Assembly: GCA_965202585.1 (NCBI GenBank)
Contig: OZ241832.1
Coordinates: 52,886,001-52,950,000, forward strand
From: Thalia democratica
Taxonomy: Eukaryota
Reading direction: 5' to 3'
Length of the DNA: 64,000 nucleotides
Position 1 is the first letter of the stretch. The number at the start of each line of letters is the position of its first letter. The notes beneath the pieces were generated by a model that was not told where the DNA came from, did not search any database, and worked only from the letters and a program-made list of their open reading frames with translations. Below, piece by piece: positions 11,290 to 62,624 of the stretch. The translations under genes were made by a program, and so were the position numbers.

Positions 11290-14200
11290 ATGAAGATCGT
11301 GATCTGTTTATTATTTTATTGCTCGGTAAGTTTTCCTGGCGTGATTCAAGAAACTTTGATGTATAACAATTATCTTTCAAAGTATTTTAAATTGTTTCAA
11401 ATAGATTTTTATATATATTCTGTAACTAAAAATAACCATACCACAACTATTAATCTAATTCTACCAAATTTTAAACTATTTAAAGCTAGAATTTTAATTG
11501 ACGGTTAACATAAAAATACAATAACAAATAGTATAGTATTTTACTAAAGATTCTCGTAACTAACATTCAAATCAAAAGCTTAAAACCTTTAATCGCATGT
11601 GAAAAGATAAACGTGCATAATTAATACATCGAAGTTACAAAACCTTGCTTTTGTTCAGAAGTTTTCAAAAGCGAGTTAACATGTCTAAATACAATGTAGA
11701 GTGTATGATTTGAACTTTCTTTTTTCTAGCTGGTCATCTCGTCCCTTAGCACTAAATTGTATGTATCTGTACACGAAGGAAGCAACAAAGGAACCGGAAA
11801 CATTGACAATCCTTTCAAGACAATTCAAAAAGCCATCAGAGTTGGAAGAAAGTTGAGAAAAACTGAAGCTTTCAGTGTGAAAATAATTCTCAGAGGTGGT
11901 ATGTACGTAGTGGATAAAAACATCGAGCTTTTTGCGCAGGTTGGCATTGAAAAACTACGACTAAAAAAACTGACTTTTTAGTATACTTTTAATCAAAAAA
12001 TACAGGATTCGAATACTACTATTACTAGTTATAGAAATGAAGAAGTCATAATTACCGGGTCGATTATCATAAAAAAAGAGAAGTTTGATTTGGTCAGAGA
12101 AAATGAAGATATAAAAGTTTACAAAGCAACTTTCGATGGCGAATGTTCACAAAATACATTCGTTGGGAGCAGAAGGCTTGTGCGGGCCAGGTTCGTCATA
12201 AAAATACTTTTGGTTAATGTGTTAAAAAGTAGTTAATAATTTTAAAAAGCTGATTGTAAAATAAAAGTTTGTTGTTCATTAAACATATTAATTCATACAC
12301 TTAGGTTTTTTTAGAGAATAGTTAGTTATCAAGAAGCAAAATTTTTAATTATTTATTTTTTAAAGTTTGGATTCTGAATTTAAAGCATTGTAGTTCAAAA
12401 CACAAGTAAATGTTCACAAAAAAAACATAAACTGCTTGCAAGTAATTAATACAACAATTTGTTCTAAGTTACATTTCTACAATGTATTTAAAAAAAAGTA
12501 AAGACTTGTGCTCTAAGTATTGTTTTAATCTCGTGAAAAACAATAAATAAAATCACAATTTATCAATCAAAATAAGTTTTTTTCTTACATTATATTTCTA
12601 CAGAAAACCCAATTTAGTCCAATGGACAGGCGAAAATATGAGTGGAGAAGGGCCTTACTTAAAAGTCAATGGATTGCTTAAAGAAACAAAAAGTTGTACT
12701 TACGAGTCTAAAGGAAGATTTCGACAAGTAAATGTTGCTTATAACTATACAGGAGTACCAATTAAAGCTTGCAAACACTGATAAATAAAGTTTACAGCTC
12801 AAGAACTTATTTTAATCGGCTCTTTTTCTTCGACTTTTGATTATAAAGTCTGGTATTTACAAAAAGTTATTTTATCTTTAATTTAAAGAGGTGGCGAACC
12901 GATAACGTTTAAATCTTTCAAATATTTCAATTTCTAGAAATGTCCCATAAGAAACAAATCGGGTTTCGTCTACAAACGTGGCGACATAACCGCTGACTGG
13001 ACACCGTCCATAAAGTCCAAGCACGGTGTGGATGTAATCGTGTTCCACGCCTGGACCGCAGAAAGGGGCACCATCGGCAAAATTGACCAGCGAAAAAACA
13101 GGGTTCTGTTCAAAAAACCACTCAAGAAGGCCGTAGGGGGTCACCCCTTCTCATCTGGGTACAGATACATTGTTGAAAATATTAAAAGCGGTAAATTTTG
13201 TTTTTTTTGAATTTGTTGATTCATTTCTAATCACTTTTGTTATCATGTAGAGTTGGACGCCCCTGGTGAGTTTTACTGTGAGCCGACTAACGGGAAAGAA
13301 TCGGAACTATTTTTTGCACTTCCGAGGAATGAAGTTCTATTTGACGACGTTTATGTAGGTGATACGTCTAAAATTTTTAAAGGTAAGTATTGTTAACTGA
13401 GTTTAAAAATAACTAAGTTAAAGTTGATTACTTTTGTGTTGAACAAAATTTTGGTGATGATTTACTAAGAAAAACATAAAATTTTGATTTAGAGAATTAT
13501 TTTTGATTTTCTCTGCTTCAACTAGTATTGAATTTTAGCAAAATATAGGTGCTTAATTATTTCGAAATTTTAATATGATTTCAAATAACTTAACCAGATT
13601 GTGTTAATACAAACTAATCAATGTAAACTCGTTAAATTTTAAGAACATATAATGTTTTGAAAATTTTTTTCACATAAAGTAATAAAAAGTAAGTCCATAG
13701 TAATAATGTACAAAAAACAAATAAGAATTGATATAATAAATTAAATTGTAACCATTCTAGTATAAAAATAGTACTTTAACTTTTTTATTAGCTAAAGTTT
13801 AGTATGAAGTTAATAAACAAAACTGTTCTTTATTAAGCAGAAATTTTATTTAAAAATGATGTTTTTTCTTTATGAAGTTATTTCCCCGTGTCTAAAAGTA
13901 TTTAATTATTGTTGTTTAACAATTTAAGAGTTGTAAAATCCATAAAATAATAATTAAAGTAAAAAAGTTTAGTATTTTATATAAATGTTTTAGATCTCTA
14001 CCTCAAAACTTTTGTCGATAAAACCTATTTTGAATGTTACTTATAATAAAATTTTACTACTGTAAAAAGACAACTGCATACTAAAACTATACTTTTAAAT
14101 TCGGCTGTCTTGCTTAAATTTAAACATGCTTATTTCAGTAAGTTTTTTTTACTTGAGTATTTTTCCAGCCTAGACACAACTTAATCTCAATTTAAAGCTA

Positions 14201-17200
14201 GCTTAGCATAAAAGTTTACTTTCAAACTATTTCCAAAACATACAGCAAAGGGAGCAAGCAACATCGCCTTCAGAGGTATATCGTTCAAACACACTGGCAA
14301 TGGAGGATTTCACGGATACAATCAAGCGAGAGCTGCCTTGATGTTTGACAATTGCTCGTATGTAACTATCACAAACTGCTCGTTTCATCACATAGGTTAC
14401 AATGGCATTTACACTCAAGGCACAAGAAACGTTAAGGTTTGCTTCTTAATCTTGTTTGTTTTTGTTTTTCTACTAAAAAAGATAAAACAGCTCAATTTTA
14501 CAACTAACTTCATATTTCTTAATTGTTTTTAGGGAAAATTCAATTTAAACGGCACAAAAAAAACGTGTATACTAATTAAAAAAATAAAACAATCAACTAT
14601 ATGATTGCATTTTTTTAATTTAAACTACTACAAAAGAGTCGATCGAAGCAACAAGATATTTTTCAGATTTTGAAAAACGACTTCAAAGACATTGGATACA
14701 TTGGAATAGCGGTAGACTACAACGACCAGCCCGGCAGTAAACTTGCGACTGAAAACGTTTTAGTGAAGAACAACACGTTGAAAGGATGTGGCGTCATCAA
14801 CATGTTTCAAGTAAGTCATTTCAACAACGTCTCTGTAGAAAAGTTCACAAAAGTTTTTTGAGCATCAGTTTTTGTTTTACAATGTTATGATGGCAGATTG
14901 CTCACTGCTTCTTCTTATTTTTTATGAAATTCTTCAACAGCCCAGCTGTATCCACGTAAGAGGAGCGGAAAACATCAGAGTGTCCTGGAACAGTGTTCAA
15001 ATAACACCTTATGCTGGAATTAGGGTTTGTGTAATTTAGCTTTAAACAGTAACTAGTATCTTTCAGTTTAATATGATTGACTTAGATATAAAGTTGATTT
15101 TTTTTTCAAGTAACTTTATTGTTTAGATGTAAAAGTAGAAGCAAACAGTATAAGTAAAATTATTTTTATATAATACATTTTGTTTGAAACAACCAAAAAT
15201 AACTTTTAAAAACATTTTCAAACAAAAAACACTACTACAAAAGTATGTGTGTTCGTTAATTCAAATTTTCTATACACAGTGTAACAAATACTACAAACAA
15301 ACTGTGTACATTTTGACAACCTCCGTAGAAAATAACTGCATTCACACCATTTGCAGGTGGGATGGCAGAAAGCGTTTGGTACAAGTTACGTCACAAGAGG
15401 AGAATACGTATTCCACGTGGATCACAACCACGTTCGTGATTACGGAATGGGAATTTTGAATGATTTCGGTGGTATTTATCTGTCAACTAACATTGCGGAT
15501 TGCAAGGATAAACAGGTAACAATATTGAGAAATTTCACAAGTGTATAGCTTAAAAGGTTAAGTGCTTATTATGTTAAAATGTTTAAAAGTATCTTAAACA
15601 AAAGTTTTTCTACAGTGTTACTGAGAACAACTCAAATTTTTTAAAACTTGGTTGTCTCAGTAATTTTAAAATATTGACAGTAGGTTATATATAACTATTC
15701 TAATTACATTACGCAAAGTTAATTAATTTTCTATAAGAGTTTTGTAAAACATGACAATTTGTTTCAAAACACTTTACTTTAAACTGTGCTTAAGCCTATA
15801 AAACACAAGCTTATGTAGAACTAAAAATAAACGGGAAATAATAAACATGTGTAGCATGTGTACGTATATAAACCATGTTTAGTTTAACTAACTTTTTCTT
15901 TTCAAAACCTACCACTTGGTACCGGAAAAAAAAGAACTATCACAACAACTGGAACTGTACAATGTTAAATAACTTTTCTTAAACACACCTCAGGACATGT
16001 CAATATGCAATTTGCACGCCTTGGTAAAAAACAACGTGGTGCACGGAGGAATACCTTATCTATACGGAGGATCTGGAGTCTACGGAGACACTTCCTCTTC
16101 TGCGTTGACAGGTATAACATGTTTAATTTTATATACTTTTTAAAACACTTTTTATATTTCATTTAGTGTTAACTATCATATGAAGCTTTGCTTGTTTTTT
16201 ATTTATGTTTCTGGCGGTACTCTTAAAAAGTTAATATTGAAATTTTGTTCAATGTATGGTTTTCTTTTTTAACATGTTTATGTGCATTAAACGGGTACAC
16301 GACTATTCAAATTCGAAAAATTTAAATTCCGACAATTCAACATCTTTAAAAAAAGTTGAAAGAGCCACAACTAAAAAAGTATTGTATATTTGTCAAATAT
16401 AAAAAAATACATACCACAGATGTTCTTGTGTTAAAACTTTATTTCAACTCACGGCGTTTCACTGCTCTCAAATAGATTTAAGAACAGATCTACGGAGTCT
16501 ATAAAATATTAACACAGATTAGAAAAAAGCAGAAAAAGTATGTATAGTTATGTATAGTGTTTATGTAGGTAATAACTATAAATGAACTTTATGGTTTAAA
16601 AACATAAAATTATAAAATTGTCTACAAAAAATACGCCGTTAGTTGAAATAAAGTTTTAACACAAGAACATCTGTGGTATATATTCCGATAAGCTTAGCTT
16701 ATCAGGATCTCCAGGATTTAACTCCTTTTAACGTTACATCTTAAAAAAATACTTATGTAGGTAATATTAATATTTACAAGCCATTTTTTTCATTTTGCAA
16801 AACATTAAATATCTTTTAAGATATGGCTCAAAAAAAGTAAAAAACATAGTTATTTTTAGTACTTTTATAATATCTTGAACAATACTTAAGATTTTGCAAA
16901 AAAGAAAAAAGTGGCTTGTATATATTAATAAGATATACATATGTATGTTTTATTTTTTTCAAATTTATATTACTTTTTTAGATATAGCTTTTTAAGTATT
17001 TTTTTTGAGGAATCGAATTGTCGAAATTTGAGTTGTCCGAATTCGAGTTGTCGTGTAACCGCAATAAACATTTAAAAAATAATATATTTATTTACTTTAA
17101 AGCAATTAAATTCACTTTTTGTGTTTAAACATAAGTTCTTAAACTGACAAAGTTGTTCGTATTACATTAGAAAAATCAAACTAAACTATAAACTAACCAA

Positions 17201-19448
17201 GACAGTTTAATTTTAAAGCTATAACATCCATGACAAACACTTTTTGATTTTTACTTTAAAAAAACGTTGAAGTGTTAGATATTTAAACAGAACATGTTTT
17301 TTACAGTAAAAGAAAACTGGTTGTACGATTTAAGCGACGCAGCCGTGGTATTTCACTGCGGACAGAGAAACTTGGCGAAAAGCAACGTTTTTGCAAACAT
17401 CGATTCCAAGAGAGCAATCGGAACTTGCAATGCTGCGGTCAGTGATAAGAATGGAACTATGCCTGAACAAGTTTGTTGTTTTTGTAGTCTGTTTATCAGT
17501 AAATGATTATAAATTTGAAATAGGTTTATTTAACTAAATCCATTTTCGCTGAGCTTGCGTGGAAGGGATTTTAAAGTCTTTATTTTAAATGAAAACTTGA
17601 GTTTAAATTTTTTTTAATTCGCTATTAAGAATAAAGTATAAATGTATACACACAAATATAAACAATTTTATAACACAAAGTTTTTGAAATAGGACTGTTT
17701 CTATTTGATAAAGTCTATAAAATATACAAGTTCATCAGTAACTTTACTAAATTAAAATAAGGCTTATATCAAAACATACCCAATTCAAACTATTAGCTTG
17801 AAAACATTTAAAAGTTATTCAGCTTTTAATCTTCTCTTTATGGTAATTACTTAAAAAAACATATGTAAAAATAACATATATATATTTGATTATATAAAAA
17901 ACAATAGTTTAGACGACCATTTCTTATATGAGATATAAAACCCCTATACTCCTCAGTAAGCTAAAGTTTATTACAATGTTAAACAGAAACTGAGAATTTT
18001 ATAATAATTATTACGTAGAATAGTAGATAGAGTTTTTTTACAGTAAGCTGAGTTTAAAAAAATACGCTGAACTTGTTAATTTGTGCATTTTGAAAAGTTA
18101 AAAAAAGGTTATATTAGAAAAATCAAACTCAGCTTACTCTACAATAAACTCTATTTACTATTACTACATCATAATTATTATAAAATTTTCAAATTTTTAA
18201 TTTTTTTTAAACATTGTAATAAACTTTAGCTTACTGAGGAGTATATAGGGTTTTATATCTCATATACGAAACGGTCGTCTAAACTCTAAACTATTGTTTT
18301 TTATATAATCAAATAAATATTTAGCTTCAATTAAATTTGTCGAGCACTATCAACCAGAACTTTTCACAAAATCTTTAACACATATATATATATATAGAAT
18401 TAAGTTATTTAACTTGATAAATTAAATCTTTCACACTGAGCCCACCTTAAGGGCTTTATTAATAACTAGGTTTATTTCAAGATGTAAAACTCAAAGGACT
18501 CGAGTTTCGTGCCTATGCACTCATCAGCTTCAAAACCAGTTAAAAAAGTACAAAACTTGTTTTGAAGCTGATGAGTGCATAGGCACAAAACTTGAGTCCT
18601 TTGAAGTATACATATAGAACTAAGTTATTTAACTTAATAAATTATTTTTTTTTCACACTGAGCCCACCTTAAGGGCTTTATTAATAAAAAGGTTTTATTT
18701 TTTGCATAATCTATTTATGCAAAAAATTTTTAACTTTCATTTGTGATTTTGTTTTGTGCTTTATTTTAAACTTGTTTTGAAGCTGATGAGTGCATAGGCA
18801 CGAAATTCGAGTCCTTTGAGTTTTACATCTTTAAATAAACCTTTTTAATAATAAAGCCCTCAAGGTAGGCTCAGTGTGAAAAATTTAATTTATTAAGTTA
18901 AATAACTTAATTCTATATATATACATATATATATATATACACATATATTAAGTGAATGGTAACAGTATCTCAAACATGTTAGTAAAGCTGTTGATGTAGC
19001 TATTTTGGAGCTGATACTTTTTTAATGTTTAGAATCACTACTACAAGTTTTATAAGTATGTACTTTTACTGTTATATTTTTAAACTTCAAACTACACTTA
19101 ACATATTTGCTATAGCAATTCACAATCGACGGGAACATTTTCTACGTTGTAAACGAGAACTTAAGAATGTGGAGAAAATTCGACTCGTGGATCTATCAGC
19201 AACCCATGTTCAGAAACAACTTGTACTATTTCGACACCGACTCATCAGAACAACGACGGACGTTCTTCCCGAGAGGAAAGAGCTATGACGAGTGGAGGAA
19301 TGAGGAAGAGCAAGATGGAGGATCGATGTGTGATGAGGATCCGATGTTCGTTGATGTCGCATCGGACAACTTCTGTTTGAGACCCGAGTCACCGATGTCA
19401 GATCTTCCCGTATATCGTCTCGACCTGACTGATGTGCAAAGAATTTAA
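11290..19448 (+). CDS. Secreted right-handed parallel beta-helix protein, GH141-like (pectin-lyase fold) glycoside hydrolase, 710 aa, 13 exons
   Basis: Exons 11290-11325, 11730-11939, 12006-12190, 12604-12727, 12938-13190, 13251-13382, 14246-14436, 14667-14810, 14941-15024, 15357-15515, 15994-16111, 17307-17470, 19116-19448 join in frame (2133 nt). Signal peptide MKIVICLLFYCSLVISSLS. Motifs typical of bacterial GH141-type proteins: YVSVHEGSNKGTGNIDNPFKTIQKA, IILRGGMY, RRLVRARKPN, VIVFHAWT, YIVENIKSELDAPGEFY, TPYAGIRVGW, NDFGGIY, GVYGDTSSS and C-terminal DPMFVDVASDNFCLRPESP. The family was assigned from remembered motifs, not from a search. Confidence 0.88.
16292..17061. mobile_element. Non-autonomous TIR element (770 bp) in intron 11 of the GH141-like gene, with internal inverted repeats
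   Basis: Ends CGGGTACACGAC and GTCGTGTAACCG (11/12 inverted match), with subterminal CCGACAATTC/GAATTGTCG motifs. Imperfect flanking duplication CATTAAA/CAATAAA. Internal inverted repeat of about 47 bp at 16411-16457 and 16633-16680. Confidence 0.7.
17883..18315. repeat. Foldback (long inverted repeat) element in intron 12
   Basis: The arm at ~17883-18060 (TATTTGATTATATAAAAAACAATAGTTTAGACGACC...CTCCTCAGTAAGCTAAAGTTTATTACAATG) matches the reverse complement of ~18125-18315. Confidence 0.8.
18397..18913. repeat. Rearranged foldback element flanked by (TA)n in intron 12
   Basis: Starts GAATTAAGTTATTTAACTT and ends AAGTTAAATAACTTAATTC. Arms of about 140 bp (18397-18536 and ~18770-18913), with extra partial arm copies at 18555-18604 and 18617-18698. 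(TA)n lies on both sides. Confidence 0.8.
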
Positions 19449-20804: not shown

Positions 20805-23800
20805 TAGTGATCTACCGAATCCACTGTTTAAGATCTGGCCGGTTCCGGGTATAATTTTTCAAATTAAGATCCTGCCAGATCCGGTTTAGAATCTATTTTT
20901 TAATTTAAGATCCGGCCGGTTCCGGATCCTAAATATTTCAAGTTTTATGTAGTTTGAATGGACAACAAACTTATAAAATTTAATTATTAGAAAACTATTA
21001 ATTAGTAAAATTTGTTTAGTACAAATATTTCGTTGAAAAAAAAAAACAATGTTATTGTCTGGAATCTGGATGTTTTATTTGAACACTAGGAAAAAGAAAG
21101 TTGTAAAAATAAAAGTCTACGTGTACGAAATCTTAGTTTAAATGTTAAATTTCAAGCTACATATACAACTAATTTTGAAATTTTTACTTGTATGACGTAA
21201 AATAAAACTAAATTAAATGTTACAATGCTTTAAAATAATAACGAACTTTCTTTTTTATGATAGGCTATACATTAGACTTTTACTTACAATAACTTCTTTA
21301 GCAACTTTTTACATATACAAAAGTAAGTAATTTGGTAGGTAATTTAGCAATAACATTTACTCATATCAACGCCATTAAGCTACAAAGAAACATATTCTTG
21401 TTTTTTCAAGTTGTGATAAAGAAATAAAAAATTTTGCCGGTTTTTGGAAACGATCGATTCCGCTTTTGTTCGTAAAAATTACCAGCTTCTGAAAATAACC
21501 TTTCAGAATAAACAGAAGATGGTGGTGCTAAAAGATACTTTCTTGCAGACCTAGCAAGATTTGTGTGTTTTTTTTTTCTTTGAGTTCCACTAAGACAAGA
21601 CTTCAGCTTCTTTAACTTCTTCAGCAGATAAATTTTCTTCAGCAAAAAAATCCTTAATTTATGTCTCAATTTCCTGATGAAGTGAATCTTGTTGCTCACT
21701 TTCGTGAGTGTTTGCACTTCTTTGTGATTTAAAAGTAGAATGGAACTACAAAAATCTTTGGGACTATCATTTGTATGTATTTGAGCTTTAGATTTATTAG
21801 GCAGTACTAGAGGAACTTGACCACTTTGACCAGTCTCACGACAACTATTATTTTTTACTTGTGATTTCAGTAGCCTTACAACCTTCTGTTTGAGATTAGA
21901 AGGGAAAAAGTCAAGTCGATACCGTGGATCAACAGCTGTTATGAGTAAAAACAAGTCGTTATCATGAACATTAATTCGTGTGCTGTTATTAGTAGTATAA
22001 AACCTTCTTTCGAAAGCGTCTTCTATTTTTCTGCCAAGGTTGTAGAACTACTTTGATCTAGACCTGGTGGACTATTATCTTTATGACTAAATACTTTTTT
22101 GGTACCGCTGCATGCGGGATTACACTTGACAGTAATGCGTTCTCCCTTCATCAGCTGTAAGAATATTTTCGGCTTTAAATTTGTTGTTAGCAACGTAGTT
22201 CTGGATACTTGTTTTTATTTTTTATAATCTTTTGAGCATTAGGTAGGTTGAGTTCCACCTCGTTTCAACATCTTGCACAAGTAATAAGGCTTTTTGCATC
22301 GACACTGATGAACCCAAAGTGACCTGGATGATTTTAGTTTCTCGCACGCTGTAGTGAATGGTCAAGTTGCCAATAGTTTGGCGGGCCTAGGCTATTAAGA
22401 AACTTATGTTACTTTCTTAAAACAGTGAATCTTTAATTGTCAGTTGAAGCATGTGAATGAAACAGGGTGCTGAAGAGGATTATAACATCAACATACCAGC
22501 CTTCACGTTAAATGCATTGTCGCGCAGAAAAACGTGAATGCGATTCATTTTATTACCCTATTTTCAAGCATCTCCTTATGTTTTCACAAATATTTAAGCC
22601 AGTGTGAGAATCTTCTATTTCCTTACAGTGCAAAGCTTGGTGTCTGTACTCAAAGCTTTCATTAAACCAATGCGCTGTTAAACAAAGATATGATGTTTTT
22701 GTTTTCGAATTTGCCCATATGTCACTTGTAAATGACAAAAACGAAGCTTCTAATAACTCAGTTTGTGCTGTTATCTTCAAACTTTAATAAGTCTGAGGAC
22801 GCATTATATCAGTGAAGTATGTAGTGCTCGAAATCAAGTAACCTGGCTCTTTAGCAGCCAACAGGTCTATGGAGCCTTGATCGCTAGTAATTGAAGTGTT
22901 CGGTTGTCCATAGCAATCGTGTTCTTATTGGATGATGATGATGATTTTCTAACCTCTAAATTTTCACTTTGATGTTTTGAATTCAAATGCTTTAGTAAAG
23001 AAGAAGTGCTGTAGGAATTAGCCTTACATACTTTAATGAGTTTGCTGCAAAGACTGCAAACTGCACAACAAGGGTCTTCCTCACTTACGTTGAAAAATTT
23101 CCATGCAATTGACATTTTAATTTAAGGAGATACAATTTATGTAACTGTTAAACACTAATTATATTAAAAATAATATGATTAGTCTTCTATTTCTACACGG
23201 TTGCCACTCTTTTTGCCAATGGAACTATATTATGTCATCTTGAGTTTTATCAAATGCTTTAAAATGTTTTTCAAAATTATTAAACTTTAAGTTTTTATCA
23301 AAAAATATGGTTATAAAAAATTGAATTTAGCTAAATTTTATTTAAATTAAAACCTAGAACATACATTTTCTGAAACTTTAAATGTTCTTGAATTTACAAA
23401 ACTATCTTGAATTATCCTGACCGTAAACCCTGTTTCTAATTACTCATTTAAAAGAAGAAGCAAACCATATCTCCCTAAATTTATCTAATGGAACTTAAAA
23501 ACTATTATGAACCCTAAAACTTTTTCAAATTTTCATCAAAAGTAGATTAAATAATGGTCATAGTGAAGATGAGAACTTAATAAATTTTTGATAAACTACT
23601 GCATGTACCTGCATTTCTAAAACAAATGATTGATTAACTAAAGTTTAGTTAGTCTGCTTCGCTTGACTAATTTATATCTACTAAACTTTAAACCACAATA
23701 ATCTAAGAATATAAAATTGAAAGAAGCAGCTGATCGCGAAAACAAAGTGTTTTTAAACTAACTGGATCCGGACCCAGCCAAATTTCAGCTAGGATCCGGA

Positions 23801-26185: not shown

Positions 26186-28624
26186 CTACCTGTACCTGTT
26201 CTGCTTGTACAGATTGTTCCTCTTCGCCTTCAGCTGCAGCCTCCGCACCCGCAGCTCGGTGAAGCTGTCGTTGTCGGAGGAGTCGGAGAAGGCGCTGTAC
26301 TCCTCGTCCTTCACTGCAGCGATCAGCTTGCTCGGGTCGTAGTTCTCGCCGCCCTGCAGGCACTTCACGCAGATCTCGTTCATCTGGTGGTAGCACTGGT
26401 TGCAGTAGACGGCGCCGCAGCTCCTGTTGGCGCACGTCTTGAACTTGCGCACCTCGTCCGCCTTGCCCTTCGCGCCGCATATGTCGCAGCGGAACTTGTA
26501 GTTGCCTTTAATAAAGTCCACCAGCTTCTGCACCCTGCCGGAATTTTTCTTCTTCGGCGGCTCCAGCTTCTTGTTGCGCAAGTAGACGATGTCCGAGTGG
26601 AAGAAGGTCTCCCTTTCCTGCCATATTTTCGCGTGCAGGTACCTCACCCGCGCCCTCTCCTGCTCCGGGTGGAAGTAGGTCATGATGCTCCTCCTCAAGC
26701 GCAGGATGTACGCCTGCAGGAAGCACACCAGGTAGACGAACAAGTACAGGACCGCGCACAGTATGTACACGCTGTAGTCGGGCCCTTGAGGCTGCGGTAT
26801 GCACAAGCTGGGGTTCAGCTCGAACGCCGGATCGATCGCCAGCCTTTTGATCGAGTCCTTGATCTGGTTGAACAACTTGCTCATGATGCCGTTTTGAGAG
26901 TTTAACTCCGTGTTTATGTGGGCGAACACCTGTTTGAATTCTTTAAAGTTTAAAACGAATTTATTTGTGGTAACTGTTAATTTAAAAAAATCTAAGACAT
27001 ATTATGCAAGTTTTAATGCAATTTTTATGTATATTTAATTTAAATTATCAAATAATAATACTTATATATTGTTTTGTCACAAACAACTTTAACTTTGTAT
27101 AAAATAACTTGTACAGCTAAAATTAAAATATATAATATTTTTATAAGTTCAATAATACATTTTTTCTAATACCTGCAAAGCAAATTCTTCAACCGTATCC
27201 ACGCTGTCCACTTGACCATGAGTTGCAATCCTCAACAACGTTACGGCGTCTTGTATTATCAGCTCCTTCCAGTCTTCAAACACGGTTCCTTTCGACGAGC
27301 CGGTGCTGGCAATTTTACTGAAAGCAAACAGTATCTGGTAGAACATATAGTCGAGCAAGAACACAATGATGGAATAAATCAAGTGGACCGTCACCAAAAC
27401 CAATCCGATGCCCGTCAGCCCAATTTCGTGAGAAGACAGCTTTTTGCTCTTTGTTGCCACGTACTTGCCCGACTCTCTTTTGGTGAGAGGCAGCAAGTAG
27501 TTCTGGTGCCTGTGCAGCTTCCTGCAGTCAATTTTTAAAAAGTACGGGGTCAAGTACACGTTGTCAAAGTCGAGGGAGGTCAGGTACTTTCTCCTGTAAT
27601 GGAAGCCCGCGTAGAAAACCCACATGAAAGAAAACACCAACAAGGCATGCGCCCACCTGTACAAGTTGATGGCAAACCCAAAGTCTTCTTTGATTCCTTC
27701 TATTATGTGCTTTGCCAAGTCGTCATGTTGAGTTTCAAAGTTCACGTCAATGGACAGTTCGTGTACAAATTTAATGTCAAAATCAAAATCTTTTTTTATT
27801 TTTTTAAACACAGGTCCGACTGTTTTTATTATTCGGTTGTAAATTTTTTTTATAATCCAGTTTGGAACATAGCAGAATATATCCCAAAACAGTTCTTTAC
27901 ACTTTTTATCAATATTGTCCAAAAATGTGTGCGAACCCTCAATAGCTTCATTTACTTGATTGTAAGTATCAATAACTTTTTGAATATTTTGTTTTAACTC
28001 TTCCGCCAGACTGTGCATTCTTTGAATTGAGCCTTTCATTGATTCCATGACCGCTCGCTGACCGTCGTTCAAAACCTGCCTCATTCCGTTGCTGGCGTTC
28101 AAAGAGAGCTCCTCGGTGCAGGACAGGACCCTGGTCGTTTCATGGTAGTTGCTCACAATGGTTCTCATTGGTCCTCCTGTAAGCACAAGCGCCATGTAGA
28201 TCAGTATCAACGACCTTCCCTCCCGCGTGCAAAGGTACGGCAGGCTGAGCAGGACTCCGCTGAAGAGCGTGTCCGAGAAGCAGATGCTGGCGGCAACAAC
28301 AAAACCAACAGCTCCACTCACGTAAAGAGGGGTCAGGCTCCAGAACTTGTTGTAGCTGACAAAAAAGTACGCCAGGTGCTGCAGAAATATTCCAAAGAAG
28401 AACTTGAAGAACACCGTCTTGTTCCTTCTCTGCCTCAAATACTGCACTTTTTTCCTTGATACTTTAACGTTGTGGTCTGAGCCTTCTTCATATTTTTTCA
28501 AGAAAACAAACTTCTTTTGGTAAGCTAATTCATTGTTGCTTGACTCTGAGCTTGAGCTATACTCGCAGGGTTCTTCATTCACTGAGGTTTTTTTAACTTT
28601 CTTTCTGCACAAATTTTTAAACAT
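26186..28624 (-). CDS. DC-STAMP domain-containing multipass membrane protein with C-terminal C4C4 RING (DCST1/DCST2, SPE-42, Sneaky family), about 731 aa
   Basis: Exon 28624-27173 and exon 26929-26186 are joined by a phase-0 GT-AG intron (CAG|GTATTA ... AAACAG|GTG). Motifs TREGRSLILIY, YRRKYLTSLDFDNVYLTPYFLKID...LLPLTKRE, CIPQPQGPD, RLRRSIMTYFHPEQERARVRYL and CDIC...CANRSCGAVYCNQCYHQMNEICVKC. Residues are a mix of DCST1-like and DCST2-like, so no symbol is given. An upstream phase-0 coding exon cannot be excluded. Confidence 0.9.
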
Positions 28625-43144: not shown

Positions 43145-46100
43145 TTTACCTAAAAACTTTGAAACGGTCTTTTAGAATGAAATTTCAAAGAATATTCTGT
43201 TTAAAAAGTTAAGCTGTTTTTAAAATATAACTTAAATGTATCAACTTACAACATTTAGATGTTATAAGAAAATAGTACTTGTTGTTCTTATATATATGTT
43301 AATAATAAGTATTTTAAAACATCAAATACTTATTATGTGTGTAATTTTATTAAAACTTTTAGAGAATAAACATCTAAAAACTAGTTAAAAAATAATATTT
43401 TTTCGGAAAATTTAAGCTTTATCTATGTTATTTAGCCTTCAAAAAATTAAATTCTATTTTTAAATAGTACTGATCTAAAAATAAACCTTGTATTATTGGA
43501 AATGGCTTAAAAGTTTTAAAATTGTTAGGATAATAACAATAAAACATGGAAATGATTGCTTATAACAACATTGTTAGGAGAAAAGTTTGAGCTTATAGTT
43601 GTCATAACTAAAGCTAAATAAAGTATATTATATGACGCTCAAGAACTTTATATAAAAATGTAAACTCATCGAGTGTATGTAATAAACTATTAATTTGTTT
43701 TTTAAAATCACATTACTATTTAATTCAATTAAACTAGATTTTAGAGACATCTGATTTTTAAATGCTACAGTCCTAACTTACTAAAATCTCTTTTACTAAT
43801 ACTAACTTTACTCTAATTATTAACTGAAAGCATATATTTGAATTTAGTTTTAAAAAAAACTATAGTAATGTTTTGGAGTATTAAGTGAACTTTTAAAACT
43901 AAAACAACCAAAAAATAAGAATATTTTTACTATAAGATAAACATGTTTATTAATAATACATCTGGAATTCGATTTTAGTTGAACGACAACTAGACTCGCC
44001 TACACTCAGGTCAAACCTCAAAACAGTTGCTTAGTATAAAGTATATTTAATAGACTATAATCTAAAAGATTACTAAATGCTGTTATAAAAATAAGAGTAA
44101 AAAAGATAAAAAGCTTGAGATTACTTTAATTCAAAATTAAAAACCTTTGATTTTTTTTCAAACAACTGAATAAGATTAAGAATAAACGTTTTCTTTAAAG
44201 ACATTGTTATGATTTGTTATTGTTTGATTAAACGTTTTACTTTGTTAATAACGTAATATAATGATACTGATTACTTAAGCTATAGTTTATTTTCAAGATT
44301 ACCAATATCATAACTAAACTATTTAGATATGGTTTAGTAAAAATTGTTTAATGAAAGTTATACTTTTATAAGAATTATAATTACCGCTTATTTAAAAATC
44401 ATTAAACAAAAAACCTTAAAAACTATCATAAAATATGGTTAAATAATTTGCTCTTAATTAAACACAAAATAACAAAATTTTACACTTGTTGATATGATAA
44501 ATGTAGTTACTATACTTTCGTTGTTTAAAGTTAAGAAGCAAGTAACTTGACTAAATTAAAACTTAGCCATGTTACACAGTTTTAAGCTAAAAATTTTTCA
44601 ATTTTACTAAATTAAAACTTGAATTTATATCATTCTGTTTACTAAAATCAAAACAGTAGTTAAAAACTTATAAGTGTTCTCTTTTTTTGATTTTTATCTT
44701 TCGTTTCTCATCTATATATTAAAAGTGATATGTGCTGTTAGGAGTGATAACAATATTTTGTTTTTTTTTTTCTTCAAAAATCCTAATAAGAGCTTTAGAT
44801 TAAGTGTACTACATTAGTTTAAGATTGAATACATGTTATTTTTATAATTTAACAAATAGTTTAAAAGTTATAAGCTTTATGGAAGCTTATTTCAATACAA
44901 TTTTGCCCTTTTTTTTCTGCTATATAATTATATTGTGTTATTACTTTTTATTAATGTGCCTAAACTTAATCTTCTATCAATTGGTCTGGCCCGTCTTTCG
45001 CTTATTTTATTGAAATTAAGAATTCTTTAATTTGAATAAAATTTTTCCCTTTTTATGTTTGTAAATATCATTTTTAATTCAACCTATTTATCTATTTCGT
45101 TCCGAAACCTGTGACTTTAAATATTGCACAAGTACAACTACTCATGTTTTGTTTGTTTTCATTATTATCTTGGCTTGTTTTTTTGTTATTATTTCATTCT
45201 TTTGGAGTAAGTTTTTTGATTATCTAAACAGTTAAGTTGGCTTTTTTAATTTGTTAAGTTCTAATGAAAATAAAAGGCAACAACACTGTCTCCGTGCTCA
45301 ATTTAATGATAATTTTGTTTGTAATATATTTTTTAAATTTTACACTAGTTACATGCGTTTAGAAAAGTGAAGTTATAGAGAACTAATTAGATGTTTTATT
45401 GCATTTTTTTCTTTAAACGTTTAGATAAATGAACAAAATATAGTTATTTTACATACACACCAGAGGCAGATCCAGACTTGTTTCCTAGTGCATGTGCTAT
45501 ACTTGAAATAGCTGAATAAGATAAAAAAATTAGTTAAAATTATTAATTGAGGACGTTTGTAATTCAAATACTTGTTGTTGTAGAACTGCTTGTGCTTTCA
45601 TACTAAAGCTTTAAATGTTGAATATAGCCAACCAAATACTGTAACAATATGTAAACTTAAATTAAGCACATTTCTTTTGTTTTATGAGTACCTTGAGATG
45701 ATCAGTCGTAACAAATTTTAAATTATAAGTCCTCAATAATTTCATAATTAGTTTATAATTTATGAGAGCTTTCGTGTGAAAGGAAATCCTTTAACTCGTT
45801 TGCATAAAGTTTGTAGTTGAAAATGCTATTATAAATAATTAAAGTTAAAATAAATGTGTAGATGTCTGTAAGATTTATCTTTAAAACATGATAAAAGAAA
45901 TTATTTATATTATGAAAAAATAATCATTAAAAGTTTTTTTAACCAGTTGTTTGCTGTTTTCAAATTTAACAAAAACTTATATATAGCAAAAGCCCTTCAC
46001 AACGCTTCATGCCAACTAAAATAACATATGTTGTAGACGAGTCTTTTATATTTGTTTATATGCACTACTTGCGCTAGATTTTTGCCTTTCTAGCCACCAA

Positions 46101-47104
46101 TTTAAAAAAATGCTTTTTCCAGTTGCGGGTTTATAAGAAATAAAATACCATTTTTGAAATATTCATAAACATTTAACCTTTTGCAACACTTTTTTAAGTT
46201 TTAAAGTTTTGCGATGCATTGAAATGAAACAATTTAATTTCAAAAGTAAAAAAGTTTTGCTCTTTGTATGAAAAGTACTCAAAATATGAATAGTTTGTAG
46301 AGCTTATTTGCGCAAAATGTAACAATCTTTTAATTGAAAATATAAATTTAAAGATGTTGAGTAAATTTATAAACGAACTATTTAAACTAAAAGTTATCTT
46401 ATTATTGTACTTTTGTATATTTTCAACATCTCTAATATACTTTATAAGTTAAAGCTAAAGAGGAGATTGGTTTTAGTATATTTTTTCTACCTCTATTTTC
46501 AATAATAAACTTTAGTTTATAAAAAGCGTCATAGTTCTTTAGAACGTTTAATCTAACATGTTAGTTAAATTAATTATGAAAAACAATTTTGATTCACCGA
46601 AAATATTGCTCATAAAAATACTCATTTGTGTTCAACTAAAACGATTAAAAAATCAAACTTCTATTTGAGTAATTTTTAATTCTTAGTAATCAATTACTAA
46701 CTTATATAAATTAAGCAAATAAAAATTAGCATCTTAAACAAATGCTTTAAAACGTATAAAAATACAGTATTCGAAAACATAACCAAGTTAAAAAATTATT
46801 TTAAAGCATACTTTTAAAAACCTTAGGCACTTCATTTTTAGCTCAACGTATGTTTAGCAAACGTATAACCAACTAAATTCAATAAAATCAACTCAGTACA
46901 AGAAAATATAAGTAATTTTAAACTTTAAAATCGACAAATTAAGTAGAGCAATCTTTTTAAAGTTTCTAGTACAAAGTTCTCGCTAAAAATAAATTAAACA
47001 CCAGCCTTGTTTTATAACTATGAGTACTAAACCACTTCGTTCAAAAATCAAATAGCTTTCTGAAACAAACTACAAAAGGAAACAAAATTGTTCACAGAAA
47101 AGCC

Positions 47105-62624
<15,520 letters not shown>

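Follow-up and report, generated by a model that had tools for sequence, protein, structure and literature searches.

A GH141-like beta-helix protein gene of Thalia democratica and the probable horizontal entry of its family into tunicates

The tunicate Thalia democratica has a gene for a GH141-like beta-helix protein of 710 amino acids, and this gene is real, expressed, spliced and under purifying selection. Enzymes of the GH141 type are a known kind, previously known almost only from bacteria; the eukaryotic form is new, and no publication on it was found. Compared by sequence, the nearest relatives of the protein are probable diplonemid protist proteins, neither bacteria nor other animals. 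The explanation favored here, with a probability of roughly 0.78 for the whole, is that the gene specifies a secreted GH141-type glycoside hydrolase of a eukaryote-specific subfamily, which probably entered the tunicate lineage horizontally.

The founding member of CAZy family GH141 is BT_1002 of Bacteroides thetaiotaomicron (PDB 5MQP), in which a beta-sandwich is inserted in a beta-helix, and 98% of the family is bacterial (PMC10154630). In BT_1002, D523 is the putative nucleophile and D564 the putative acid/base (PMC10154630; PMC12786026), roles that have been proposed without experimental demonstration (PMC10154630). The original prediction had named a fucosidase and a xylanase as the only characterised activities, which is out of date: endo-fucanases are now also known (PMC12786026). 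Of the three known activities, two are on fucose-containing plant or algal polysaccharides.

Structure and Expression of the Gene

The gene occupies positions 11290-19448 of the plus strand in the window (the whole stretch of 64,000 nucleotides that was analysed). A reconstruction from the raw letters gave 13 exons, 12 introns with GT..AG borders throughout, and an intact reading frame of 2133 nucleotides that specifies 710 amino acids and a stop codon, as had been predicted. Exon 1 (11290..11325) begins with an ATG, which aligns with Met1 of the transcript-derived ortholog P0053, and ends at a GTAAGT donor. The N-terminus (MKIVICLLFYCSLVISSLS) is signal-peptide-like, as judged by eye; the original prediction of a signal-peptide exon is right as to the signal, but exon 1 encodes only residues 1-12 of it, and the remainder lies in exon 2 (11730..11939), together with the N-terminal beta-helix cap. 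This cap has the motif YVS..G.N.GTG..PFKTIQKA and a weak DUF1565 N-terminal motif, and was aligned by profile with the N-termini of BT_1002 and PDB 9rx2.

Exons 3-6 (12006-12190, 12604-12727, 12938-13190 and 13251-13382) correspond to the region matching the GH141 beta-sandwich insertion domain and encode four invariant, tunicate-specific cysteines (129, 175, 187 and 279). Exons 7-9 (14246-14436, 14667-14810 and 14941-15024) encode the central beta-helix coils, including a GCGV..MFQPSCIHVRG motif with Cys418 and Cys428; when single exons were compared with Pfam and PDB, exon 7 had a weak match to Pfam Beta_helix (E 9e-5). Exon 10 (15357..15515) encodes a GWQ motif, the NDFGGIY motif (beginning at residue 488, with Asp489) and the start of a two-cysteine insert (Cys502), and exon 11 (15994..16111) encodes the second cysteine of the insert (Cys511) and the GVYGDT motif (beginning at residue 534, with Asp538), the two aspartates being 49 residues apart. 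Exon 12 (17307..17470) encodes the FHCG and GTCN motifs (Cys563 and Cys586), which are common to the protist sister clade. The C-terminal domain, which carries a DPMFVD..DNF.LRP.SP motif, is encoded by exon 13 (19116..19448) along with the stop codon. It has no counterpart in BT_1002, where the alignment stops near profile position 574, and is found in 9rx2, where the alignment reaches residue 714 of 717, and in many bacterial homologs. Intron 11 contains a non-coding foldback (MITE-like) inverted repeat (16406..16684) with 52-nucleotide arms that are 96% complementary, whereas the 1.6 kb length of intron 12 is explained by several nested inverted repeats within it (17937..18928), with arms of up to 165 nucleotides.

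P0053 is a protein of 708 amino acids from an intronless contig of a Tara Oceans metatranscriptome and has 72% identity to the Thalia protein. It is collinear with the gene model over residues 1-710, through all 13 exons, with two indels of one amino acid each and none at an exon junction. The 13 exons are not open reading frames that line up by accident. The dN/dS ratio between the gene and this ocean transcript (L001) is 0.11. The RNA evidence from Thalia democratica itself is a single low-depth contig, in which the predicted exons 11 and 12 are joined, the loose end of record 26 of run X5 being the first 30 bases of exon 12; this spliced contig comes from run X5 only, and runs X1-X3 are genomic.

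Fold and Family

A profile made from tunicate sequences only (A2) matched, among PDB sequences, 9rx2_A (E 1.9e-31) and 5mqp, i.e., BT_1002 (E 4.4e-23), the match to 5mqp_A consisting of three stretches (BT_1002 residues 37-122, 229-327 and 369-581). A mixed profile (A1) matched the same two at E 1.9e-85 and E 2.3e-72, respectively. The single tunicate protein P0003 had no match in PDB by phmmer at E up to 10; thus, the similarity to BT_1002 is visible at the profile level only. The AF2 models are of the orthologs P0003 (pLDDT 75) and P0053 (pLDDT 81.5), standing in for the 710-residue protein, and the best structural match of both was 5mqp. In Foldseek, it came first (E 2e-23), ahead of the next family (E 6e-13); VIA-align gave Z 35.8 over 500 aligned residues at 2.6 A, compared with Z 29 or less over about 330 residues for generic beta-helices. 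The fold of these models is a parallel beta-helix that is right-handed and has an inserted beta-sandwich, as in GH141. Together with the profile matches, this bears out the GH141-like beta-helix that had been proposed from the sequence.

Formal membership of GH141 is borderline for the tunicate protein, since tunicate proteins fall below the threshold of the Pfam domain GH141_M (PF21231) and are 16-21% identical to BT_1002. The gathering cut-off is 27 bits; P0003 scored 16.2 bits, P0053 and P0012 had no match, the protist relative P0046 scored 24 bits, and the bacterial-type relative P0018 passed with 33 bits. In the models, the insertion domain is present structurally yet divergent. No family for the tunicate protein was found in NCBIfam.

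The likeness to BT_1002 extends from the inserted beta-sandwich to the two essential aspartates, but BT_1002 has neither the two-cysteine insert nor the C-terminal domain of about 110 residues nor the extra cysteines, and, as an enzyme of the bacterial periplasm or cell surface, belongs to a pectin (RG-II) utilisation locus, whereas the tunicate protein is predicted to be a secreted animal protein. The closest solved structure by sequence is 9rx2, a bacterial “Parallel beta-helix repeat protein” of 717 residues, which is like the tunicate protein in length, in full architecture (including the C-terminal domain with its DPMFVD..DF motif) and in both aspartates, and differs from it in being without the two-cysteine insert and in having a bacterial lipoprotein-like N-terminus. 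No paper on 9RX2 was found; as far as could be found, its function is unpublished.

Distribution Among Tunicates

Homologs were found in every tunicate sampled, including Clavelina (at least nine copies), Styela, Ciona intestinalis and C. savignyi. The Thalia protein has 40-43% identity over the full length to the annotated Clavelina, Styela and Ciona proteins, and each of the 12 introns has the same position and phase in the Thalia gene and in its counterparts in Clavelina and Styela (two chromosome-scale assemblies). Thus, the gene predates the split of these tunicate lineages. The 12 introns and the secretion signal had been thought to be gains of the gene; the introns are there, but with the family being tunicate-wide and its introns shared, introns and signal are old and not particular to Thalia.

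The statement that vertebrates have no familiar ortholog holds, in that no vertebrate or other deuterostome ortholog was found in the database searches run. No other named animal was found with the C-terminal exon of 110 amino acids, for which alone the search was exhaustive, word-index searches missing relatives at about 40% identity. Homologs do occur in rotifers, the euglenid Ploeotia and the haptophyte Chrysotila. No paper was found that links GH141 or the gene LOC100183085 to tunicates, rotifers or diplonemids.

In being a predicted carbohydrate-active gene of non-animal type that is tunicate-wide, has introns and, as far as searched, is absent from other chordates, the gene is like CesA and the GH6-1 and GH16 candidates (PMC13390645, PMC7464555), but unlike the known tunicate transfer genes, its nearest relatives are protist, not bacterial. 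The 2026 Ciona catalogue of horizontal-transfer candidates does not list it; at the BLAST threshold that this screen applied to a small landmark database, the gene would escape notice.

Relatives and Origin

In the phylogeny, a tree without the rotifer homologs, the tunicate sequences form one clade (100/100), and its sister is the Artemidia-type (probable diplonemid) clade. Together, these two clades are split from the bacterial-type sequences, the next group outside, at 100/100. Ploeotia, likewise a euglenozoan, sides with the bacterial-type sequences and is thus outside the diplonemid-like clade. Common to the tunicate and protist clades are an insert of about 20 amino acids with two cysteines between the catalytic aspartates, the QP, GWQ and FHCG motifs, and one further insert. 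Six extra invariant cysteines were gained in the tunicate proteins, among the aligned homologs; three or four of the tunicate “extra” cysteines are also present in the protist clade and, therefore, were not gained in animals as had been supposed. Identity is 27-29% for the protist clade and 22-25% for the closest bacterial-type proteins.

In the genomes of 185,579 bacterial and archaeal species, the tunicate motifs led to no relative, and no bacterial sequence bearing the inserts of the subfamily was found. In the same genomes, the LNDFGG motif was found in 12 proteins of Acidobacteriota and Dormibacterota (about 1,150 amino acids), initially candidate donors, which were rejected, as they have that motif only and none of the other inserts. 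In viral contigs, none was found, which gives no support for a giant-virus vector.

Since no ortholog was recovered from other animals in the searches, of which the one with the C-terminal exon was exhaustive, we infer a horizontal origin. Entry into the tunicate lineage would most likely have been by horizontal transfer, before the sampled groups split; the 12 introns would have been acquired early, followed by vertical inheritance and by expansion in Clavelina. The bacterial-type origin originally proposed fits the wider family, but with a probable diplonemid clade as sister group, a simple transfer from bacterium to animal is not established. Possibly, the gene passed directly from a bacterium to tunicates and the protist clade acquired its copy separately from the same unsampled bacterial lineage. 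The overwhelmingly bacterial membership of the family, the structural neighbours in the Atlas (Planctomycetota, Verrucomicrobiota and Bacteroidota) and the earlier uptake of bacterial CAZyme-type genes by tunicates (CesA and GH6; PMC13390645) are all consistent with this, whereas the lack of the inserts in all of those species genomes and the lower identity of the bacterial-type proteins make it unlikely, though worth serious consideration. A more far-reaching proposal is doubtful as a whole: that the transfer was from eukaryote to eukaryote, involving the tunicate stem and a lineage of marine diplonemid-like protists, that the proteins are a new eukaryote-specific, disulfide-stabilised GH141-related family, and that this family has a role in the tunic or house matrix.

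Vertical descent of an ancient eukaryotic gene, lost nearly everywhere and surviving in tunicates and euglenozoan protists, is improbable. It could account for the single clade with shared indels, for the absence of the subfamily features from every bacterial species genome sampled, and for the homologs in Ploeotia, Chrysotila and rotifers; but the gene would have to have been lost independently by virtually all other opisthokonts and by most eukaryotic supergroups, the euglenozoan Ploeotia sits apart from the diplonemid-like clade, and the exhaustive C-terminal search recovered no other named animal.

The Catalytic Aspartates and Function

In HMM alignments, the family's aspartates in “sDfaGiY” and “GvYgDt” are placed at residues 528 and 569 of the BT_1002 chain, i.e., native D523 and D564, the counterparts of Asp489 and Asp538. 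Neither residue varies in any of the 30 aligned homologs. The two aspartates noted at the outset do lie at the catalytic positions of BT_1002. They are 49 residues apart here, compared with 41 in BT_1002, owing to the two-cysteine insert between them. Another 17 positions do not vary among the tunicate, protist and bacterial-type sequences, and conservation within the protein is highest in the motifs around the two aspartates.

By analogy with BT_1002, Asp489 and Asp538 most likely cleave a glycosidic bond as nucleophile and acid/base, and the insert between them would form a disulfide-type loop that, with the QP, GWQ and FHCG motifs, marks the eukaryote-specific subfamily of tunicates and probable diplonemid protists. 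On these grounds, we infer catalytic activity and, from the N-terminus, secretion. Beta-helices also serve as adhesins (PfbA is among the structural matches), and the six cysteines gained by the tunicate proteins could suit a carbohydrate-binding or structural protein, e.g. a matrix or adhesion component, that has lost catalysis; such a loss is very improbable, given the invariant aspartate pair and other positions, the conservation concentrated around them and the low dN/dS.

The substrate is not predictable from membership of GH141, as the activities in the family (fucosidase, xylanase and endo-fucanase) are diverse. The endo-fucanases Wf141_1/2/4 of Wenyingzhuangia fucanilytica and the xylanase Xyn141E are bacterial GH141 enzymes of polysaccharide-utilisation loci with the same conserved aspartate pair (PMC12786026), likened here by description rather than by sequence comparison; a filter feeder could plausibly take in, as food polysaccharides, the marine sulfated fucans on which the endo-fucanases act. 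Perhaps, and this is a guess, the tunicate enzyme acts on a fucose- or L-galactose-containing, often sulfated, polysaccharide, either of phytoplankton that the animal has eaten or of its own tunic or house matrix.

A pseudogene was also considered as a reading, and then rejected or down-weighted. Bacterial contamination or an assembly artefact, for which there is the bacterial flavour of the family and nothing more, is refuted by twelve AT-rich spliceosomal introns (24% GC, compared with 42.5% in the coding sequence), by the flanking animal genes (including an adjoining DC-STAMP gene at 26.2-28.6 kb) and hAT fragment on the same contig, by three independent genomic runs that span exons and introns, and by the identical intron positions in two other chromosome-scale tunicate assemblies.

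Significance

The gene represents a conserved, expressed and, to judge from its residues, probably catalytically intact tunicate branch of the essentially bacterial GH141, and joins the few foreign carbohydrate genes of tunicates as a candidate that the most recent systematic screen did not list. The eukaryote-specific subfamily has signatures clear enough to be followed in plankton data. With its protist sister group, the gene is a useful test case for eukaryote–eukaryote versus bacterial transfer. It further offers a testable way to ask how filter-feeding tunicates and diplonemids cope with marine fucans that are recalcitrant, or remodel a sulfated matrix of their own. If the more far-reaching proposal were true, the family would work on a lineage-specific sulfated L-galactan or fucan matrix (the tunic or house) rather than on food, and would be the third foreign carbohydrate gene behind the tunicate body covering, after CesA and GH6.

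The gene and its product

Rebuilt from the raw sequence, the gene occupies positions 11290-19448 of the plus strand and comprises 13 exons, which together form a single open frame of 2133 nt encoding 710 amino acids plus a stop codon, reproducing the original prediction of an intact 13-exon, 710-residue model. Each of the 12 introns has GT-AG boundaries, and the GC content is 42.5% in the coding sequence vs 24% in the introns. Introns 11 and 12 are enlarged by foldback, MITE-like inverted repeats (16406-16684 and 17937-18928), some of them nested, with arms of 47-165 nt and a complementarity of 84-96%. There is one copy of the gene in the 64-kb window (tblastn). The N-terminus of the protein, MKIVICLLFYCSLVISSLS, reads like a signal peptide, in line with the animal signal-peptide exon that had been proposed, although exon 1 encodes only the first 12 residues of this putative peptide. 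An AG that might accept a trans-spliced SL lies 20 nt upstream of the ATG. The motifs NDFGGIY and GVYGDT start at residues 488 and 534, respectively, and the two aspartates already noticed in them, 49 residues apart, are Asp489 and Asp538.

The last exon was used in an exhaustive HMMER search and the full model then in BLAST, which together turned up a homologous protein of 708 amino acids (P0053), encoded by an intronless ORF (locus L001) on a contig of 2304 nt from a marine eukaryotic metatranscriptome of JGI (sample 3300018950). It is 72% identical to the modelled protein and collinear with it over residues 1-710, with two indels, each of a single residue and neither at an exon junction. 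Codon comparison of the gene with this transcript gave dN 0.17, dS 1.5 and dN/dS 0.11. Three public sequencing runs (X1-X3) are genomic and span the exons as well as the introns. In a further run with the same organism label (X5), one 151-nt contig reaches position 16111 and then carries on with 30 bases identical to those with which exon 12 opens at 17307. The contig thus joins exons 11 and 12 precisely where the model does, which answers, for one junction, the call for a check on splicing. These data show a real gene that is spliced and evolves under constraint.

Contamination is excluded by the adjoining DC-STAMP-family gene and hAT transposase fragment and by the genomic coverage of exons and introns. 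The nearest clearly animal neighbour downstream looks like a gene for a DC-STAMP-family membrane protein (26186-28624, minus strand), in which two long ORFs match one half each of the Pfam DC_STAMP model (E 1.6e-17 and 2.1e-21). Between the two genes sits a probable transposase remnant (21406-21954, minus strand), a 182-residue ORF with a hAT-family C-terminal dimerisation domain (E 4e-6). GC content, 23-33% elsewhere in the window, jumps to 41-51% at 46000-50000, where two long ORFs lie on the minus strand (47105-48625 and 48710-49504), both without a Pfam match. The genomic runs, labelled as the source organism or as a second organism, show many differences from the window across 11309-16002; the 14 listed exon differences comprise seven synonymous changes and seven that are not. 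With 90-99% identity, the second organism appears to be either a close relative or a divergent haplotype.

Assignment to GH141

Pfam and PDB searches with single exons or single sequences gave too weak a signal. A profile built from eight tunicate proteins only matches PDB 9rx2_A, a bacterial protein of 717 amino acids entitled "parallel beta-helix repeat protein", with E 1.9e-31, and 5mqp_A, the structure of the Bacteroides GH141 founder BT_1002, with E 4.4e-23; for a profile of mixed homologs the values are 1.9e-85 and 2.3e-72, respectively. Structure matching used AlphaFold2 models of two orthologs standing for the Thalia protein. The model of P0003 (43% identity to the Thalia protein; pLDDT 75, pTM 0.81) has 5mqp as its best match (Foldseek E 2e-23), the next family being at 6e-13, so that BT_1002 came out on top in the comparison that had been suggested. 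The model of P0053 (72% identity; pLDDT 81.5, pTM 0.85) matches 5mqp_C best (VIA-align Z 35.8 over 500 residues, 2.6 A), followed by generic beta-helices with Z of at most 29 over about 330 residues.

HMM alignment sets the aspartates of the family motifs sDfaGiY and GvYgDt against residues 528 and 569 of the BT_1002 chain, i.e., native D523 and D564. These are 41 residues apart and are described as essential and as the putative nucleophile and acid/base (PMC12786026, PMC10154630). Asp489 and Asp538 are thereby aligned with the catalytic positions, as had been anticipated. Both are invariant in 30 of 30 aligned homologs (tunicate, protist and bacterial-type), as are 17 further positions. The C-terminal domain that exon 13 encodes is shared with 9rx2 and many bacterial homologs but absent from BT_1002. 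The Pfam model of the GH141_M insertion domain stays below threshold in the tunicate proteins and is passed only by a bacterial-type relative. By fold, homology and catalytic pair, the prediction of a GH141-type hydrolase is well supported, and the protein would form a remote branch of that family.

Distribution and intron age in tunicates

Relatives with 39-43% identity to the Thalia protein are present in Styela clava (LOC120341895), Ciona intestinalis (LOC100183085), Ciona savignyi (H2YGZ6) and Clavelina lepadiformis. One locus each turned up in Ciona and Styela, vs at least nine paralogs in Clavelina, several of them on one 8.5-Mb contig, which looks like a lineage-specific expansion. The exon maps of one Clavelina locus (L022) and the Styela locus (L023) have 13 exons each, and all 12 introns share position and phase with those of Thalia, the first, inside the signal peptide, to within two alignment columns. 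The intron-rich structure is therefore older than the divergence of these lineages. Tunicate monophyly is supported at 100/100, and the deepest tunicate split separates the Thalia gene and three plankton/transcriptome sequences from the three ascidian genera.

Relatives outside the tunicates and origin of the gene

The best non-tunicate matches are three proteins with 27-29% identity. P0096 belongs to the diplonemid Artemidia motanka (EukProt transcriptome); P0046 and P0095 are single intronless ORFs on metagenome contigs of 57-58% GC, which look eukaryotic from their spacers of about 1.4 kb and an RCC1/LRR neighbour. In an IQ-TREE analysis of tunicate, protist and bacterial-type sequences, the clade of tunicates and these three proteins is split from all bacterial-type sequences at 100/100. 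The alignment reveals five derived characters common to the tunicates and the protist clade that occur in neither the bacterial-type sequences nor the euglenid Ploeotia: a one-residue insertion with a QP motif, GWQ, an insert of about 20 residues with two cysteines between the catalytic aspartates, FHCG, and an insert around a CN motif. The two-cysteine insert is the reason for the aspartate spacing of 49 rather than 41 residues. The nearest relatives are thus not bacterial, as both the tree and these characters point to the protist clade. Nor were the "extra cysteines" all gained by the animal gene. Among the 16 cysteines of the Thalia protein, six are tunicate-specific and invariant (129, 175, 187, 279, 418 and 428) and two are confined to the Thalia gene (672 and 687), but three or four (502, 511, 563 and 586) are common to the protist clade; Cys 358 is universal among the homologs and two lie within the signal peptide.

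No bacterial or archaeal protein with the signatures of this subfamily was found in the 185,579 species genomes scanned, nor did the viral contigs scanned yield any. Acidobacteriota matches were dismissed, having only the LNDFGG motif in common. These matches, encoded in metagenome-assembled genomes of Acidobacteriota and Dormibacterota (L010-L021), are proteins of about 1,150 amino acids with a GH141-like beta-helix. They carry the same GILNDFGG(I/V)Y as the eukaryotic subfamily and a distinct insert, SDASSQD(T/S)DGYGG, but lack all of the eukaryotic inserts. The nearest neighbours in the ESM Atlas are rotifer-rich eukaryotic clusters and clusters of Verrucomicrobiota and Planctomycetota.

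The origin is less certain than the enzyme assignment. Our preferred reading is that the gene was acquired horizontally before the sampled tunicates radiated; the donor may have been a protist, or a bacterium outside the sampling that passed the gene to protists as well, and the transfer may have run in either direction. Ancient vertical descent with massive loss could also place the gene in tunicates and protists, but it is improbable, as it requires many losses and conflicts with the position of Ploeotia among the bacterial-type sequences.

Substrate and significance

Known GH141 activities are alpha-L-fucosidic cleavage in RG-II, endo-xylanase, and endo-fucanase on sulfated fucans (PMC12786026 for the last). 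Given these activities, and given that tunicates and diplonemids live by filter feeding or predation, our leading guess is that the substrate may be dietary fucose-rich algal polysaccharide; alternatively, the enzyme might remodel the animal's own matrix of sulfated L-galactan or fucan.

Database annotation of these proteins goes no further than "uncharacterized" or "right handed beta helix domain-containing". The Ciona relative is absent from a 2026 survey of horizontally transferred Ciona genes (PMC13390645), the thresholds of which would miss this gene, and we found no literature linking GH141 to tunicates, rotifers or diplonemids. We regard the gene as a previously unrecorded eukaryotic version of a known enzyme type, and the link between protists and tunicates or a role in the matrix, if confirmed, would raise its significance.
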